Source: Selaginella moellendorffii
Lineage: Eukaryota > Plantae > Lycopodiophyta
Direction: 5' to 3'
NCBI RefSeq assembly: GCF_000143415.4
Contig: NW_003314326.1
Location: forward strand, 879,609-943,608
Length of the DNA stretch: 64,000 bases
The notes under the pieces are model-generated. The model saw nothing but the letters and a program-made list of their open reading frames with translations. It did not search any database and was not told the origin of the DNA. The position numbers were made by a program, and so were the translations under genes. The stretch's first letter is position 1; the number at the start of each line of letters is the position of its first letter. Positions 50,852 through 59,257 of this stretch are shown here, one piece after another.

Positions 50852-52248
50852 TCAAATGGTGTTGAGAGAACACAAGGTGTCCAGCGGAAGCTTTGGATCG
50901 AAGTAGTTTCCACTCAGTATCTGCCTGGTGATGATCCTGTTCGCGGCCTCGGTGTAGTGAACTCCATCCCAGTTGAGATACTGAGATGGATCCTTGCAAG
51001 TCGTGGACACCACTGACTTGCCATTCACGATCTTCGACTCCCCGCACTGGACCCCGAAGTTGTAGTTGTAATCGCCTCCTGTGCCGCAGCAAGCCCGAGT
51101 CGCGTATTGGAATCCTGGAAACACGAAACGAGAGAATCACTGGAGTTTGTAACTTTGCTCTTACCGTAGCTGGCAGCGTTGAGCGTGAGAGCGTATTTGA
51201 TATCGTAAGAGTTGAGGTAGACAATGGTGGTGCCTGTGAAGGCGGCTCGCATGAGTCTCGAGGCCTTTCGAAGGAGCCCGTTGTAGTACTGCGTCACCGC
51301 GTTGAACTCTCGAGCGCATCCGGCCGAGTCGTAAGTCACTGCCAAGTTTGGGAAATTGGTGAGGAAGTATGGGACGCAGCCTTGCGGGCCGACGTCGGAG
51401 ATGATGAACGTCTTGCCTCCTTCGGCATACACTCCCTGGATGAAAGAACAAAAGGGAAGAAGCTATCAACGCATTGAATGGATTACCTTCACGAGGAAGA
51501 TGATCCCGTCCACCACTTGATGGATGTACCCCTTGACTTGATCGAACGTCATGTTCCTCGTGTAGCCGTAGCTAAAATCATTCCCACCAATGTCCACATA
51601 GTAGATGGCTCTGGAGAAGACGCTCGGCGAGGGAAGAGCATTCAGATTTCTTGTTCCTGGCAAAGAAAGCATCCGTCAGATTTCTATCCAGCTGAGGCTC
51701 ACTGTCACTACCATTGCTCGCAAGGACTCTCTGCTTGAATTCCCTGAACTGGTTGAGCTGAACGTTGAGTGAGAAGGGGCTGATGTATGTCACGGCCTGC
51801 GATGTAGCTCCGGCTGTTGCGAAGTTGACACCATAGGTGTAATTCGATCCAACAGACTGGAAGTAAGGACTGAGGTAGGGAATCCCAAGAGCTTCAGCTG
51901 AAATCCACATGTAACAGAACACCACCATCAGATCGAAACGAAACGAAACGAAACGAAATCTAGAAGCGAAAACTTACAGAGGAAATCAACACCGAGCCGA
52001 CCATCGCTGTATCTTAGAAACGGCTTCCCAGGGAACGTCATGCCATAAGGAGCAAACTCCGCCTGGCTGAAGGTCGGGAATGCCGCCTGGATTCCTCCAG
52101 TATCCGAGGTCGAGTCTCCAAAGTTGAAGAGCGCAGGGAAAGTAGCACACTCCGATGCCACTCTCGAGATTTGGCCAAGCGACACGAGCGCAACGATCAC
52201 GACTGGAATAAGCGTGCTCTCCATTCTGACCGCTCTCATCCTTGGCAT
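50852..52248 (-). CDS. GDSL esterase/lipase (SGNH), multi-exon
   Basis: Signal peptide, then FNFGDSTSDTGG, RYSDGRL..DF, GVNFATAGA, IGGNDF, GPQGCVP, ACCG.GG.YN, WDGVHYTEAAN. Start at 52248 or 52224. Confidence 0.95.
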
Positions 52249-52687
52249 CGGACAAAACTGGCTAAATGGTCCTCCCCTGCCAGCATCGCTAGCTGTGAAG
52301 AAAGAAGAGACAAGAAGTTAGAGTTGTATATCTAGAACACCCGGTGCTTTACCCGTACCGAGCAGTAAACCTCGGTGATCCAGTGGCGGATTCCGATGGT
52401 TAGGTGGAGAATTCGTTCTTTATTCAAGACGACGAGAGCCACGGTGATGGTATCTGCACAGAAGCACGAGTATCATCAAAGCGCGGAGCTTGAAAAACTT
52501 ATTTTCCATACATTACCTTAAGAAGCAGCCTTGATGATTGCAAATCACGAGGAGCACGTAGACTTTGTTGCTGCTGGCTGGCCGCATAAAGCTACTGAGA
52601 TTTCTCCAATCCAGCTTCCAAGAGTCAAGCGAAAAAAGCCGAGCGACATGCTTTCCCGGAAAGCAAGCGAAGCAGCTCTTCAGCTTT

Positions 52688-54472
52688 TTAAGCACCACCT
52701 CTCGACTCCCTCTGTGCTGTTTCCCTGTCGACAGATTTCCTCAGCTCTTTCCAATGCCTGATGACTTCCCACGGAGGTGTCGGGCTCGGCCTCTTGAAAA
52801 AGTCGTGCTTCATCGACAACACCTGCTTGCGGCTCGGGAAAGGCCGCTTCACCACCGTCCCATCCTCCTCGTCAACTTTGATGATCAGATCCTTGGTGTA
52901 GTTCTCTATAGTCCATGGCAGCGTCTTTTGGTGCTTGCCTGTGATGGTGAGCAGGCACGAGTACCTCAGGTGGTAGTTCACCAGCAGCCTCACTTGAGGA
53001 AGATTGTTGGCACACCTGTAGTACTTGAGGATGCTCAGCGCAACGTGAGCGTACAGCAGCACAATCCCCTCGTCGGTCATGTTGAACATATTCCCGACGT
53101 GAGTTTCCTTTCCTCGCTTGAAAAACCCGGCTTCCTCCAGTAGCTTCTTGAGCTCGTCGATTGGAGCAAGCAGGTCCACGCTCGAGAACCACGTATTCCC
53201 CGTCCACATGTTCTGTATCAGCTTTGCATCGACTTTACGACTCTTGCGCGCGTCCGCTTCCGCTCGCAGGACTTTCTGGTAAAACCCTCTCAAAGTCCTG
53301 TCGATGTCCAGCGAAGCTTTCATGACCTTCGGCGGTAAAGCTCGGCTGGCCAGCTCGTTCAGCAGAGTCGAGCTTGGCCTGGGGTGGTAGGCGTCCTTGT
53401 ACTTGGACTCTTTGATCATCTGCTTCAGAGCTCCCAGAATCTTGACGGAGTTCGTTTGCAGCCCCCTGATCTCGCTGCCGGTTGCCTTGTTTGAGATCTC
53501 CATCCTCATGCGCTCCCAGTGGAGATCATCCTCGAGTTTCGCGTCGATCCTGATCTGCTCGGATCTGATACCGGGAGGACACATCCCTTTCTGCATGCTG
53601 TCGTCGAAGCTTTCCTTCAAAGTTATCCCGATGGCGTGTGAAACCGCATGTTGAAACTGCCGGTTGATGCGATCGATGTGCTCCATCCGGGTCTGGATAA
53701 GAATCTTGCAGGCTCTCTTCAGCCTCTGGAGATGAACCTCACCCCTGAAGCTCTCCGGCTGGAGTACAGGCTTGTAAGAAACTCCAAATCCCAAGTAGTC
53801 CACCTTTCGAGTGTAGTGCCTAATACCAGAGCGGAGTGAATCCACTATCAGGCCCTGCTCGGACTCCACAAAACTGGAAACTTTGTTGTAAAACTCCTGG
53901 CAAGCCACTCGATCAGTGCCGCTGTAGCCAACTAGCAAATTTCCTGCGTGCCTCACGTACTGTTTTCTCTGTTTCTTCTTTGCTGCGTCTGCGTCTGTGC
54001 CTTGGAGGTTTTCGAGCTCCTGCCGGACGAAGCTGTCAACTCGATGCAAGCAGATGTTGGTCCACAAGAACGAAAGGCCCTTGCTCAGGATCGATCCATC
54101 ATGCTTGACGGGCGTTTTCCACTGGAGCTCGAGATGCCTGTAGTCCACCATCTGTTGCAGAAGCTCTACGAGTGCACCATCGTTCACGAAAGCTTTCACA
54201 GCTCCTGATGCCTCACTGCTTCTGTCGGCCTTGACATCCCTCACCGTCAGCTTGACGAAGAAAGAAACGTCTCTCCAGTGACGCAAATCTTGCAGAGCTG
54301 TGTGAAACCCGCGGCCAGGCCGGAACGAGTGGCAGCTGGGCAGGAACAAGTCCTCGAACACCCTCTGGAGCACCAAGAAAACCGCCTCCTTGACAACTCT
54401 GCCATCGAAGCCGGGAGAGTGCCGGCGAAGGATGATGTGCTCGTCGTGTGGAAACTTGCCTTTGGGTGCCAT
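52688..54472 (-). CDS. Free-standing group II intron maturase-like protein (degenerate RT + domain X); nuclear maturase candidate
   Basis: 594-aa ORF with RVVKEAVFLVLQRVFEDLF..SCHSFRPGRGFHTAL (RT2), GSILSKGLSFLWTNICLHRVDSFV (RT4), YVRHAGNLLVG (RT5; YADD replaced) and VDYLGF (RT7). Domain X: LLAPIDELKKLLEEAGF...SILKYYRCANN...LRYSCLLTITGKHQ. The 5' end is uncertain. Confidence 0.88.
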   Translation of the reverse strand: MAPKGKFPHDEHIILRRHSPGFDGRVVKEAVFLVLQRVFEDLFLPSCHSFRPGRGFHTALQDLRHWRDVSFFVKLTVRDVKADRSSEASGAVKAFVNDGALVELLQQMVDYRHLELQWKTPVKHDGSILSKGLSFLWTNICLHRVDSFVRQELENLQGTDADAAKKKQRKQYVRHAGNLLVGYSGTDRVACQEFYNKVSSFVESEQGLIVDSLRSGIRHYTRKVDYLGFGVSYKPVLQPESFRGEVHLQRLKRACKILIQTRMEHIDRINRQFQHAVSHAIGITLKESFDDSMQKGMCPPGIRSEQIRIDAKLEDDLHWERMRMEISNKATGSEIRGLQTNSVKILGALKQMIKESKYKDAYHPRPSSTLLNELASRALPPKVMKASLDIDRTLRGFYQKVLRAEADARKSRKVDAKLIQNMWTGNTWFSSVDLLAPIDELKKLLEEAGFFKRGKETHVGNMFNMTDEGIVLLYAHVALSILKYYRCANNLPQVRLLVNYHLRYSCLLTITGKHQKTLPWTIENYTKDLIIKVDEEDGTVVKRPFPSRKQVLSMKHDFFKRPSPTPPWEVIRHWKELRKSVDRETAQRESRGGA

Positions 54473-54919
54473 ACACAGATGCCGTGTTCTTAGTGTAGAG
54501 CAAGCGCTGCAGCATTGCGTCCTGGCCTGCGCAACAAGATGGCAAAACCTGAGGAGAGCAACTAGAAAAGAATGAGAATGTTACTCACTTGTAAACGCCT
54601 CCATCCGGAGAGCATTGCCCTTTAAACCCTAAACCCAGAACGAACGAAAGTGTCTAAGAACTTTACCTCACTGAGGTTCCTGGAGATGCTCAGCGAGCTA
54701 GAATCAGTTTCTGGAAGTATAAGAAAGAGTTGATTCCTTAGTTCCAAGCAATCCAGTTCCCAATAAAAGTAGCTTCCACAGTCCGTGCGAATTCCTTTCC
54801 ATCACCACAGGCGTCCATAGTTCTCAGCTTTCCTCCTCTTCTTCGTCCCTTACCTCAAGCTATCCCTGTCCAAGGCGTCCTGCTCTACCCGCTGGCCGGC
54901 CGCTACAAGCTTCTTCCCC

Positions 54920-56030
54920 ACTGCTGCTGGAGGTGGACCAGATCTATCACCTTGCGTGCCCAGCTTACCCCGTGAAGACGATCATATCTTTTCTTGGCAA
55001 TCTTTTCTTTTGCTTCTTGCTCTTGTTTGCTGCTTGCCCGCGGCCCGGTTTGGTTTTTGTTTTTGGTGTTGTTGCTCGTCCCTTGGTTTGTCCTCGACTT
55101 AGGCATTTACAAGACCAACGTGATGGGAACCTTTCACATGCTCGGGTTGGCCAAGCGTGTTGGTGCTCGTTTTCTTCTCACAAGTACCAGTGAAGTTTAC
55201 GGAGATCCGATCGAGCACCCGCAGAAGGAGGACTATTGGTAAGATCGATGTTTCGGTTCTGCTTATTCACTTGTTCTTCGTAAGTAGTGACTTCTAACTT
55301 GGTTTTGGTACTTGCGTTATTAATGTAGGTGTTCGGAGTTGCTATGATGAAGGCAAGCGTGTTGCTGAGACGCTGACCATGGATTATCACAGGGATGATA
55401 GTGTCCATGTAAGATATAACTAAGCATGATCTTTTTTTTTTTTGTGGTGAGATTACAACTTGCGCAATCACTGATGATCAGGTGAGGATTGCCCGAATTT
55501 TGGTCCACGAATGTGCATCGATGATGGCCGCGTAGTGAGCAATTTCGTTGCACAGGTAAGAAGGCTCTTTCTGCTCATACCTTGTAATTCACAACAGCTT
55601 TGAACTTAGGCTCTACGTAAGGAGGCCATGACTGTTTACATGGAAAGCAAACTTGGAGCTTTCAATGTGTCAGATCTGGTACCTTGCGTTTTTTTCTTCG
55701 ACCGAAGCTTACACGTTTAGCATGCAGCTTATCAGCTTAATGGAAGGTGAGCACATCGGACAATCCCGGAGAGTTCACCATGTTGGAACTTGCACAGGTA
55801 CGTCCAAATTTCCACGCCATCGTTTGCAATCGAAAACCATGCCACAGGTGATACGAGAGACGATTGATCCAGAGGCAAAGATATAGAGTTCCGGAACAAC
55901 ACGGAGGACGATCCACACAAGAGGAAGCCAGACATCACCAAAGCCAAGAAACTCCTTGGCTGAAAGCCCAAAATCTCCCTGGGGGAAGGGCTGCCTCTCA
56001 TGGTGGAGAACTTAGGCGGCGAGTGTTTAA
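54920..56030 (+). pseudogene. UXS: UDP-glucuronate decarboxylase (UDP-xylose synthase) pseudogene
   Basis: Exon remnants [111 protein letters not shown]. Several micro-deletions and frameshifts, a TGA at about 55961, and no N-terminal NAD-binding motif found. Confidence 0.9.
54984..55110 (+). other. U12-type AT-AC intron
   Basis: Splits ...PVKTI|KTNV... exactly. 5' end ATATCTTT, branch-like TCCTCGAC at 55091-55098, 3' end TTTAC. Confidence 0.85.
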
Positions 56031-57429
56031 TGGTGAGAACTCGAGGTAAAAGAGGCCACGGTTTTTGGAACAGGAGAGTTACAACAAGGCAGGCTTGCAG
56101 GCTGTCCTGTACACCTATCGAGCCACAGGAGAGAAAAAACTACAAAAGAAAGAGGCAACACGGAATGGCGGTGAAAAGTTTCCAGCTTCTCAGCAGCTTG
56201 TTTCCATGGTGATATTTTCAATCTAGGAGAGAATAAAGTTTGTTGTTATGATTCTTAGCCAGTAACAGCGATGGTGGTGGTGTATGTTTCACTAGGAATT
56301 TGCCGGAAGAACAGCGAGCTTCCTGTGGTTTTGGAGGATTTTGTCCATGATGTTTGAATTAACAGCCATGAACTACAATGGAAGTTTAACGCTCTCTTTT
56401 CGTACTGTCGGTCCGATGACTAGAGACAAGGTAGTGTCTGCATTGTTTTGTAATTTTTTACTTTGGATCTAGCATCAGCATCGTATGTGCAAGATTTTGA
56501 CACCCCAGTGACGAGACGAGCGACTCATTCATAAATTCTAGATTGTGATGTAAAAAGTCGAGAAGATATTATAAATATATATCGTAAAGGAAATTTTTCA
56601 GATGTGAAATCGAGTGGAATTTTTTCAGCTGTGACACCCTTCTACTCGGACACGATTGGCCCAGGAGCGACCAATTAAAATCGTTGTTCCTTCAGAATTT
56701 CAAAGCCGACTCCAATCGTTAAATTCTTTGCATTGAGCTTTGTTGGTGCTCGTCGTAAAGCTCCAAAGCTCGCTGGTTATCATACCTATATAGGTATGGT
56801 TATCATACCATAGCAATCAAGTGAAAGCGGGTGAGCGAGCATAGGCAGATTGTTCATTGCAAGAAGCCTGCAACGTTCTCTAAAGAAACCGGTGCTCGAC
56901 AACAGAGCAAGGTGCTTGTCAACAACGCTTGAAGAGGTTGAAGACACTTTCCTCGGCTGTAGAGATTGTGATCAAGCTTTTGCTAGGGGCTTCTTCACCT
57001 TGAATTTTCTCCTAAAATCTTGTAAACAGCCGATGTATTTCTGCTGAGATGCTTTGAGGTACCTGAATGTTAAGCTATCAAGAACAGCACTCACAGCTGG
57101 AAATAGTTTAGCACTAAGTATTTACTTTATGTTTTCTTCTCTAGATTTTCATGTTCGAAACAAGTTTTCTTGTCAAAATTTTGATGTTCGGAACCAATTA
57201 TTTTTCTCCAATAAAAAGTTCTGCTACTAGAATAATACTATCAAGGCTCAAAACTAGACTTGTGATGGCATCAGGCTGTGTCATTTAAAAAACGGGAAAA
57301 AATCATTCTCATCCTCAAACTCATGCTTGAGATCTTGAATCTCCCAGCGGCCTTCTCACTGCCTAGACGAAGAAACTCTTTTCTGCATTATAATGATTCT
57401 ATAGAATATGCCTGGTTTAACATAAATAG

Positions 57430-57881
57430 GACAGCACGGATTTTTGTGAAAGCATCTGTGTGCCACAGGTGGAGAGCAGTGATTGACAGTCATGCTGGAG
57501 ATTTCCTCCTCTGGTCCTTGAATACACAAAAGATCAGTTACAGCACCACTACCTTTCAGTAACGACGATGCAACTGTTTTGCCACTGCCAGATCCGGATT
57601 CGGTCCGCTACTGGGAGCCCGTTGCCTCTGCCGGGGGCCTGCTTTGTTTCTCCCACCACTTTCTTGCTGGTGCAAAGTTTGCGGTGTGGAATCCGGCTCA
57701 TTTGTGGTGCTGCCAGGTAAAACACTCATTCGATTTAAAGGGCGCCTATGGTGGTGGAGGCTTTGCGACTGGCGGTGGTGCTTACGGCGGTGGAGGAGGC
57801 GCTTACGGAGGTGGCGACGGTGGTTACAGTGCTGGCTACAGTGGTGGCGGTCAAAGATGGAAGTCTAAAGAAGGGCATTGA
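57430..57881 (+). pseudogene. F-box/F-box-associated gene fragment fused to a glycine-rich segment
   Basis: SVCHRWRAVI (end of an F-box), a frameshift, PVASAGGLLCF...VWNP, then GAYGGGG repeats ending GGGQRW. Confidence 0.6.
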
Positions 57882-58456
57882 CGTGTTTGACTCGTTGACC
57901 TAGTCGTGGCGGCGTCACCAGGGTTGGGTGGAGGGCGGTCAACAGATAGGCTATGACTTGGGATCAAACCGGTGTTGGATCGAGCATGAGAGGAATGTTG
58001 CTCCAGGCTGATAGAATGGAGTTAATCTAGGCTATTGTACAGCATGACAATGGTGATATGATTGTTTTTCTTTGGAACACAGGGTTTGTTTCCAAGGCGT
58101 GGTAGTTTGGAGAGGGTGCACAATTTCAATTATCCTAAAGACTTCTTGTATAGATAACAGTTTTTACTGGGATACAACACAAGTTCCTCTACTTGTGTGC
58201 AACTCATTTCAGCTTTAGGAGCGTAATATCTGATTATAGAAACAAAGTCAGAGAATTAGAATCACCCAAGGAGCGTTTTGTTTTACTTTACTTTGATCTT
58301 GAAGTCCATCTCTTTTTATTTTAAGAAAATTTGTAGAATTTTCTGGCTTAATCAAGTGGTGTTGGTTTGAAAACCTGACGAAAAACTAGCTCTCCCTACT
58401 GGGAACTAAATCAGCTCTGTGGATCCATAGTGTTGTGCCTTTCAACTGTATTATGC

Positions 58457-59257
58457 TCATGGCTTATCCAAGCTAGGTATAAAAAGTTCATAATACTGAG
58501 CAGATTTTAGTTCTACTGTTTGGAAAGTGTCCCAAGTGTCATGAACCAAGTCATATGCCATGTAAACTCCGTGGAACATGAAGCTGCAAATCACCATATT
58601 CCCAACTAAACCGCTAAAATGCAAGGGAGGCCTCCGATTGAAACGTCTCACCCATTCATCGCGGAAAGGGAATTTTGCCACCAGTCTCCGAGGTTCGCAC
58701 TTCCATATATACAGGGTACGTATATCACCAGGTCCAGAGACGGTAGTTGCATAGTCAACTTTGCCCAGATATCTTTTCTTCATCTCTGACCACTCCCCTG
58801 TCTCAGATTTGTAAACCATCACATTGTCACTCTCGTGCCCATAAATCCACAGCGTGTAATTCCGTGTCACTGGATCCACTATAAACTCTTCTTTAGTAGT
58901 TTCTTTGTTGGGAAAAACCTTGCGATGGTTGGTCAAAGGGTTCCATACAAAGAGATCAGAAGGGCTTTCTGACAACCATCCGGCAATCAATCCATTTGAT
59001 GCTATAGCAGGCAATGAGCGACATATTTGATCGTACCCAATGTTTAATTTGAAGCTAGGCTGTGATCTGGAGAATGGGAACCATACCTCCGTACTGCTTG
59101 TAAAGAACACCATGACCGCCGGCTGATCGCCATAAAACCGGGAGAAGTTGTGGGAGATGAGAGAATCCCATGCTTTGCACACAAGCCTACAACGAAGAAG
59201 ACTTCGGAGATCAAGATGGCAGAATATTTCCCACAGCATCCATCCAGAAAGCTCCAT
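58457..59257 (-). CDS. F-box protein with F-box-associated region, intronless
   Basis: MELSGWMLWEIFCHLDLRSLLRCRLVCKAWDSLI (F-box), ASNGLI, LFVWNPLT, VYKSETGEW. The ORF extends to 59410, but the start at 59257 is preferred. Confidence 0.88.
   Translation of the reverse strand: MELSGWMLWEIFCHLDLRSLLRCRLVCKAWDSLISHNFSRFYGDQPAVMVFFTSSTEVWFPFSRSQPSFKLNIGYDQICRSLPAIASNGLIAGWLSESPSDLFVWNPLTNHRKVFPNKETTKEEFIVDPVTRNYTLWIYGHESDNVMVYKSETGEWSEMKKRYLGKVDYATTVSGPGDIRTLYIWKCEPRRLVAKFPFRDEWVRRFNRRPPLHFSGLVGNMVICSFMFHGVYMAYDLVHDTWDTFQTVELKSAQYYELFIPSLDKP

Follow-up and report, generated by a model that had tools for sequence, protein, structure and literature searches.

As a class, plant maturases combine an intact domain X with reverse transcriptase (RT) and endonuclease (D/En) domains that are degenerate and non-functional (PMC9321910). 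RT0 is absent from MatR and MatK, and D/En is absent from nMAT1/2 (PMC9321910). These dead-RT proteins serve as splicing factors (PMC9321910, PMC3927076), and all characterised plant maturase homologues act in organelles (PMC9321910). For Selaginella, seven nuclear maturase loci, which arose by shared as well as by independent transfers, are attributed to Guo and Mower (2013) in the summary given in PMC3927076. The mitochondrial DNA (mtDNA) of S. moellendorffii contains 34-35 group II introns, and nad1i728g2, the location of matR in seed plants, is occupied by nad4L (PMC5654404). Here, we describe a divergent maturase gene of S. moellendorffii, encoded in a stretch of 64,000 nucleotides from contig NW_003314326.1 (assembly GCF_000143415.4, positions 879,609 to 943,608), which is referred to as the window. 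The locus is probably one of the seven published ones.

The gene is real and transcribed, and it is a very divergent further example of the known dead-RT nuclear maturases rather than a new kind. It is homologous to group II intron maturases, has lost the catalytic residues, lies among nuclear genes, is transcribed in sense orientation with a leader that is spliced in one contig, and has a paralogue in the same genome. We propose, with a probability of about 0.6, that it is a functional gene derived from a mitochondrial-type group II intron open reading frame (ORF), the product of which would be imported into an organelle, bind intron RNA there and act in trans as a splicing factor.

A degenerate RT with an intact domain X, encoded in the nucleus

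The maturase ORF was detected by a six-frame scan and extends over 52688-54472 of the window (minus strand), with 594 uninterrupted codons between the ATG at 54472 and the stop codon at 52688-52690. The remaining five frames over this region are closed by 7-30 stops each. The same ORF is annotated as a 594-aa gene on scaffold GL377630.1 of assembly GCA_000143415.2. A first-pass annotation, made by a model from the sequence alone, had correctly reported an intact 594-codon ORF among nuclear genes, but let the feature end at 54620, which lies in the 5′ leader.

A Pfam scan of the 594-aa protein detected domain X alone (PF01348, aa 431-525, E 2e-12, above the gathering score) and did not reach RVT_1. 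A phmmer search of PDB sequences matched LtrA (E 2.5e-17), which aligns in three blocks: RT2-4 (aa 20-151 with LtrA 103-235), RT5-7 (aa 169-234 with LtrA 300-364) and X (aa 430-525 with LtrA 382-482). An AlphaFold (AF2) model, built on an alignment of 17 sequences, has a mean predicted local distance difference test score (pLDDT) of 69, which rises to 85-94 in the palm (aa 170-230) and to about 90, and up to 95, in domain X (aa 430-530). The top Foldseek match of this model is again LtrA (8h2h_D, E 5e-11), and the next matches are other RTs of group II introns. The protein thus has the fingers/palm fold of the family (RT2-RT7) as well as the thumb (domain X).

The catalytic aspartates are absent. 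The YADD of RT5 is replaced by HAGN, as had been noticed before, the catalytic Asp of RT3 (FDI in the family) is Thr76 in the site KLTV, and the PQG of RT4 is also lost. Judged from its sequence, the protein is a homologue of intron-encoded proteins and not an active RT. The first-pass annotation had reported that RT1 was deleted; RT1 is gone, but so is RT0, and SPGFDGRVVKEAV represents a shortened RT2, aligned with PTFTDKLIQEAV in LtrA. A tblastn search with 11 homologues did not find an upstream RT0/RT1 exon anywhere in the window. Neither Pfam nor the 17-sequence alignment revealed a D/En (HNH) domain, i.e. the Cys/His tail of the Coleochaete and metagenomic relatives, so the claim that an HNH endonuclease is lacking holds. 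Domain X is followed by a tail of about 60 residues (aa 531-594) with a motif that is common to the Selaginella paralogues. The first-pass annotation overstated what sets the gene apart, as an inactive RT, the absence of RT0 and a missing D/En are the norm for plant maturases (PMC9321910).

RT7 and domain X are separated by a linker of about 195 aa, which is predicted to be helical with low confidence (pLDDT 41-72). Comparably long linkers with recognisable common motifs are found in seed-plant MatR, in maturases from Coleochaete and Zygnema, in ORFs from atp1 introns and in the Selaginella paralogue, and many HMMER matches align from about aa 345-370 onward. The linker is therefore ancestral to the mitochondrial-type clade. 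The first-pass annotation was right about its length, its likeness to MatR and, at low confidence, its helicity, but it is a family trait and not an insertion of this gene. Twelve residues are invariant across the 17 aligned maturases, which include the protein described here (R51, H57, N139, D146, R174, G185, G228, P437, I470, N490, S505 and T509), and these sit in the RT2a, RT4, RT5, RT7 and X motifs.

The setting of the gene is nuclear. Directly downstream is a GDSL lipase gene (ATG at 52248) with short GT..AG introns, and a full-length gene for the U6 spliceosomal small nuclear RNA is found in the neighbourhood (48496-48598, plus strand; Rfam RF00026, 110 bits, E 1e-28). An Rfam search with E values up to 1 detected no group II intron RNA domains within 48000-59000, i.e. 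within 4 kb of the ORF, in agreement with the first-pass annotation; the ORF does not reside in domain IV of such an intron. Its GC content at third codon positions (GC3) is 0.70, which confirms the nuclear-like, GC-rich codons noted earlier and exceeds that of the first exon of the neighbouring gene. The overall GC content is 54%, compared to 68% for S. moellendorffii mtDNA (PMC5654404). With transcripts, and flanked by the GDSL and U6 genes on GL377630.1, it is an expressed nuclear gene.

As the protein family is mitochondrial in origin, a recent mitochondrial insert (nuclear mitochondrial DNA, NUMT) or a group II intron remnant with an open frame due to chance had to be considered. However, a recent insert would have mitochondrial composition and unedited codons, whereas the gene deviates from mtDNA in GC content and its frame is open without RNA editing. 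Both the leader and the downstream region contain spliceosomal introns, the locus is flanked by nuclear genes and U6, no intron RNA is nearby, and the closest relative, with only 25% identity, is itself a nuclear paralogue. These findings refute an insert or intron remnant, to which we assign next to no probability.

Transcripts, gene model and constraint

RNA evidence was obtained from three studies, as raw reads from stranded RNA-seq and as transcript contigs, the latter originating from two studies other than that of the stranded runs. In the two stranded runs, the ORF is covered in sense orientation only (0-4×). Transcript contigs are collinear with 52517-54526/54625, so the gene is not unexpressed.

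Contig X6 stops at 54526 and carries 16 extra letters which correspond, with one change, to 54604-54589. These letters therefore indicate a 62-nt GT..AG intron, the size of which fits the neighbouring introns (51-82 nt). Contig X1 retains this sequence. We conclude that a 62-nt spliceosomal intron is probably present close to the 5′ end of the gene. The earlier description of the gene as intron-free holds for group II intron RNA but probably not for spliceosomal introns.

Splicing of this intron brings the ORF into frame with the first ATG of the mRNA (54615), which adds 27 aa (MLSGWRRLQARTQCCSACSTLRTRHLC) and results in a protein of 621 aa. This extension contains five R/K and no D/E and is presequence-like. 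In the paralogue, two small 5′ exons encode MRLLAIVRRYSK..., which is joined to one large maturase exon. We thus consider the two-exon model with 621 aa to be the more likely coding form. One of the three upstream ATGs in the intron-retaining mRNA opens an overlapping frame of 100 codons. This frame (54213-54515, minus strand, ATG at 54515) is out of frame with the maturase start; its product, which begins with MLQRLLYTKNTASVYG..., is presequence-like, and its translation would draw ribosomes away from the maturase ORF in mRNA that retains the intron. The frame probably exists by chance.

If translation starts at ATG 54472 without the leader, the product might be a neofunctionalised RNA-binding protein that acts away from organellar group II introns, e.g. 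as a cytosolic or nuclear factor. The 594-aa form begins with MAPKGKFPHDEH and has three acidic residues among its first 27, unlike a presequence, and the loss of RT0 and RT1, the shortened RT2 and the extreme divergence (at most about 30% identity to all maturases) would be consistent with a new function. However, translation from the first AUG of the spliced mRNA would be in frame and provide a presequence-like leader, the paralogue has a typical presequence, and the characterised plant maturase homologues are all organellar (PMC9321910). We therefore regard neofunctionalisation as improbable.

Both long contigs, from two studies, run past the maturase stop and through two further introns into the GDSL exons (51486-54625, minus strand). 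They represent either a read-through or dicistronic transcript or a case where the assembler has merged overlapping untranslated regions (UTRs). Raw-read depth falls to 0.25-0.86 between the two genes (52402-52568), and this favours merging by the assembler without settling the matter.

Allelic variation was taken from the RNA runs. Seven positions of the ORF vary, with three synonymous and four conservative changes (N97D, S147T, N196D, S200N), and neither stops nor indels were found among these alleles. The terminal branch of the gene in our tree of 61 maturases (see below) corresponds to about 1.6 replacements per site. Since 4% of the point changes in the ORF would create a stop codon, a frame that is intact after this number of changes must have been under selection during most of its existence; a recent loss of function is possible. 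Identity to the paralogue is 35% in domain X and 17% in the linker.

Several observations weigh against a functional organellar splicing factor. The pN/pS ratio of 0.38, which is based on 7 single nucleotide polymorphisms (SNPs), is not significantly below 1 (p 0.19), and two protein database searches did not find an orthologue in another species. Expression is low, with the 0-4× coverage obtained from 1.4 Gb of reads per run. The leader depends on a single contig end (X6), and intron retention as in X1 leaves three upstream ATGs before ATG 54472. Finally, RT0 is a main intron-binding surface in LtrA, so that a protein without it could bind RNA weakly or in a different manner.

A decaying relic, i.e. 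a once functional copy that is now redundant with its paralogues, transcribed only within the long leader at the 5′ end of the GDSL lipase mRNA and translated little if at all, would account for the contigs that extend into the GDSL exons, for the unspliced leader with its upstream ATGs and overlapping frame, and for the low read depth. It is also compatible with the very long branch, with the lack of a known orthologue and with the fact that four of the seven SNPs are non-synonymous, all of them located in the RT part. However, none of the alleles seen has a disrupted ORF, its GC3 is above that of the first exon of the neighbouring gene, and the family-invariant residues are retained in conserved RT and X motifs. 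In addition, a contig that covers two genes is no proof of a single transcript, and the depth drops between them. We thus consider a relic possible but rather unlikely, and prefer a functional maturase gene. The features of the locus are listed in Table 1.

Table 1 Features of the maturase locus in window coordinates.
Feature	Position	Strand	Evidence
Exon 1, proposed coding part: ATG (54615-54613) and first 9 codons, MLSGWRRLQ	54589..54615	-	end of contig X6
62-nt spliceosomal intron, GT..AG (probable)	54527..54588	-	spliced in X6, retained in X1
Main exon including stop codon	52688..54526	-	ORF, collinear contigs, annotation in GCA_000143415.2
Degenerate RT fingers/palm, RT2-RT7 (aa 18-235)	53768..54421	-	LtrA alignment, 17-sequence alignment, AF2, Foldseek
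RT3 site KLTV, Thr76 for catalytic Asp	54242..54253	-	alignment
HAGN replacing YADD, RT5 (aa 175-178)	53939..53950	-	alignment
RT7-X linker, helical at low confidence (aa 236-429)	53186..53767	-	alignment, AF2
Domain X (thumb), best conserved part (aa 430-530)	52883..53185	-	Pfam, AF2, identity to relatives
Post-X tail (aa 531-594)	52691..52882	-	alignments with Selaginella paralogues
63-nt GT..AG intron 3′ of the maturase stop	52454..52516	-	contigs running into the GDSL gene
66-nt GT..AG intron, second between the maturase stop and the GDSL ATG (52248)	52293..52358	-	transcript contigs

On the other side, the maturase gene is adjoined by exons that resemble UDP-glucuronate decarboxylase (UXS; 54918-56300, plus strand). 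Abundant RNA reads are placed on these exons, but they differ from the window at fixed positions and extend upstream into an exon (FELIRHDVVE) that is absent from the window. The reads therefore stem from a paralogue, and the UXS-like copy in the window looks like a 5′-truncated fragment or a poorly expressed copy.

Selaginella relatives and phylogenetic placement

An exhaustive HMMER search returned 1045 proteins at E ≤1e-3, but only four at E ≤1e-30, and identity to any maturase is limited to about 30%. The best non-self match comes from the same genome, which supports the earlier view that the gene is possibly lineage-specific. This is LOC112343197 (allele LOC112345680; XP_024522058-60, XP_024528727), named "nuclear intron maturase 3, mitochondrial-like" by NCBI, which aligns end-to-end with 25% identity (E 2e-48). 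The two proteins have much in common: both are nuclear-encoded and RT-dead (YVRHGTQF in LOC112343197), have a long RT7-X linker and a post-X tail, and lack the En domain, so that Pfam finds X alone. In LOC112343197 the presequence is encoded on small 5′ exons, and the leader proposed here is likewise on a small 5′ exon. The paralogue differs by having about 100 more N-terminal residues and by its location on another scaffold (GL377574.1).

A third relative, P0108 (243 aa, GL377630.1 946840-947633), consists of domain X only and lacks the RT part altogether. It is found 12.8 kb from the maturase gene on the same strand, 3232 bases beyond the end of the window. Its domain X is 34% identical to that of the maturase gene and 41% to that of LOC112343197, and all three group together in a domain X tree (SH-aLRT 86). 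An allele of P0108 on GL377580.1 identifies this as a second haplotype scaffold for the region. The maturase gene and LOC112343197/LOC112345680 form an old Selaginella-specific family, which probably includes P0108. A fragment of 151 aa (P0035) is 40% identical in X. The next matches are mitochondrial maturases from Zygnema and Coleochaete, ORFs fused to atp1 exons, metagenomic sequences and seed-plant MatR.

A tree was computed for 61 maturases from a trimmed L-INS-i alignment (LG+C20+F+G4). The maturase gene and its paralogue are sisters (SH-aLRT 99) within a large mitochondrial-type group with an unresolved backbone, and both are on long branches. When the paralogue is removed, the gene is placed at the base of the mitochondrial-type group with a support of only 29, i.e. 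without a supported position.

The absence of matR from the mtDNA, and an identity to MatR of 37-39% over the matched stretches, prompted us to consider that the gene is a matR that was transferred to the nucleus. This was rejected by approximately unbiased (AU) tests, whether the clade comprised seed-plant MatR (p 1e-4) or also the Zygnema and Coleochaete sisters of MatR (p 0.0034). As the groups for the AU tests were named after the tree had been seen, and as long branches are involved, these and the following p-values are indicative.

Two nuclear genes from angiosperms are among the matches, P0049 from Nepenthes gracilis (BSYO01, bioRxiv 10.1101/2023.06.14.544965) and P0119 from Acorus calamus (GCA_030737845.1, bioRxiv 10.64898/2026.04.27.721116). 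The two share 64% identity and a degenerate endonuclease tail, and P0119 joins the lineage of P0049 in a later tree. Their sister (support 99) is another nuclear maturase from S. moellendorffii, P0089 (GL377612.1, 852 aa, single exon). This lineage probably represents nMAT3/4 (type II), to judge from nuclear location, mutual identity and the degenerate tail rather than from any name. P0089 as the single Selaginella sister fits the published nMAT3/4 lineage, which has a single Selaginella member (PMC3927076).

The free trees keep the maturase gene and its paralogue apart from the type II lineage, and a clade that unites them with P0049 and P0089 was rejected (AU p 1.3e-4). Sequence comparison thus indicates that the gene is orthologous neither to MatR nor to the type II nMAT lineage. 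The gene had been considered distinct from nMAT1-4, and this is borne out with respect to the type II lineage, probably nMAT3/4, the one nMAT lineage covered by the comparison. No nMAT1/2 was found among the matches checked, which were 30 by name and 8 by encoding contig, most matches being nameless.

A more far-reaching scenario would combine two claims: that the maturase gene, LOC112343197 and P0108 go back to a separate, Selaginella-specific transfer from mitochondrion to nucleus, independent of nMAT1/2, nMAT3/4 and MatR and outside the seven published loci, and that splicing or retention of the 62-nt intron switches between an organelle-targeted protein of 621 aa and a form, blocked by the upstream ORF, that serves mainly as leader of the GDSL lipase mRNA. 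Taken together, we consider these claims quite improbable. The novelty of Selaginella-specific nuclear maturases was overstated in the first-pass annotation, as several have been reported by Guo and Mower (2013), according to the summary in PMC3927076.

Proposed role and comparison with known plant maturases

We propose that an ORF from a mitochondrial-type group II intron moved to the nucleus and gave rise to the present gene. Its protein retains the scaffold of the RT fingers and palm and the intact thumb (X), while all three catalytic aspartates, RT0/RT1 and the DNA endonuclease are lost. With these losses, RNA binding is possible but reverse transcription and mobility are not. The small 5′ exon, joined via the 62-nt intron, most likely supplies the basic and acid-free leader of 27 residues, which could direct the protein to an organelle, probably the mitochondrion. 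There, it may help one or several of the about 35 mitochondrial group II introns to fold and to splice in trans, by analogy to MatR, MatK and nMAT1-4.

In Selaginella mitochondria, about 35 group II introns are present and RNA editing is extreme, and the nuclear splicing helpers are known only as a list of loci. The pair formed by the gene and its paralogue illustrates the extent to which a retained maturase can be stripped, with neither RT0/RT1 nor catalytic residues nor an endonuclease left, and the way in which an import leader may be gained via a small 5′ exon. This adds a data point for maturase evolution. It leaves the general picture unchanged, as nuclear maturases with a dead RT, like lineage-specific transfers in Selaginella, had already been published.

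Among the known plant maturases, MatR (mat-nad1i728g2) resembles the protein described here in being of mitochondrial type, in its long RT7-X linker, in the loss of RT0 and in the lack of a working endonuclease (PMC9321910). It also shows the highest identity over matched stretches, mainly in X. However, the matR gene lies in a mitochondrial intron, and the MatR sequences in the alignment have kept YADD-like motifs. MatK, too, is reduced to a partial, dead RT and domain X, and is a generalist splicing factor without RT0 (PMC9321910). In contrast to the gene described here, MatK is plastid-encoded in the trnK intron and retains RT5-7 only, and there is no sequence affinity beyond the family level. 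The type II lineage (P0049, P0119, P0089) shares the nuclear location, the degenerate RT and the intact X, and presumably acts in trans on mitochondrial introns. It differs in having kept the N-terminal RT0/RT1 region and a degenerate D/En tail, forms a clade of its own with P0025 from Coleochaete (support 99), and already has its own Selaginella orthologue, P0089.

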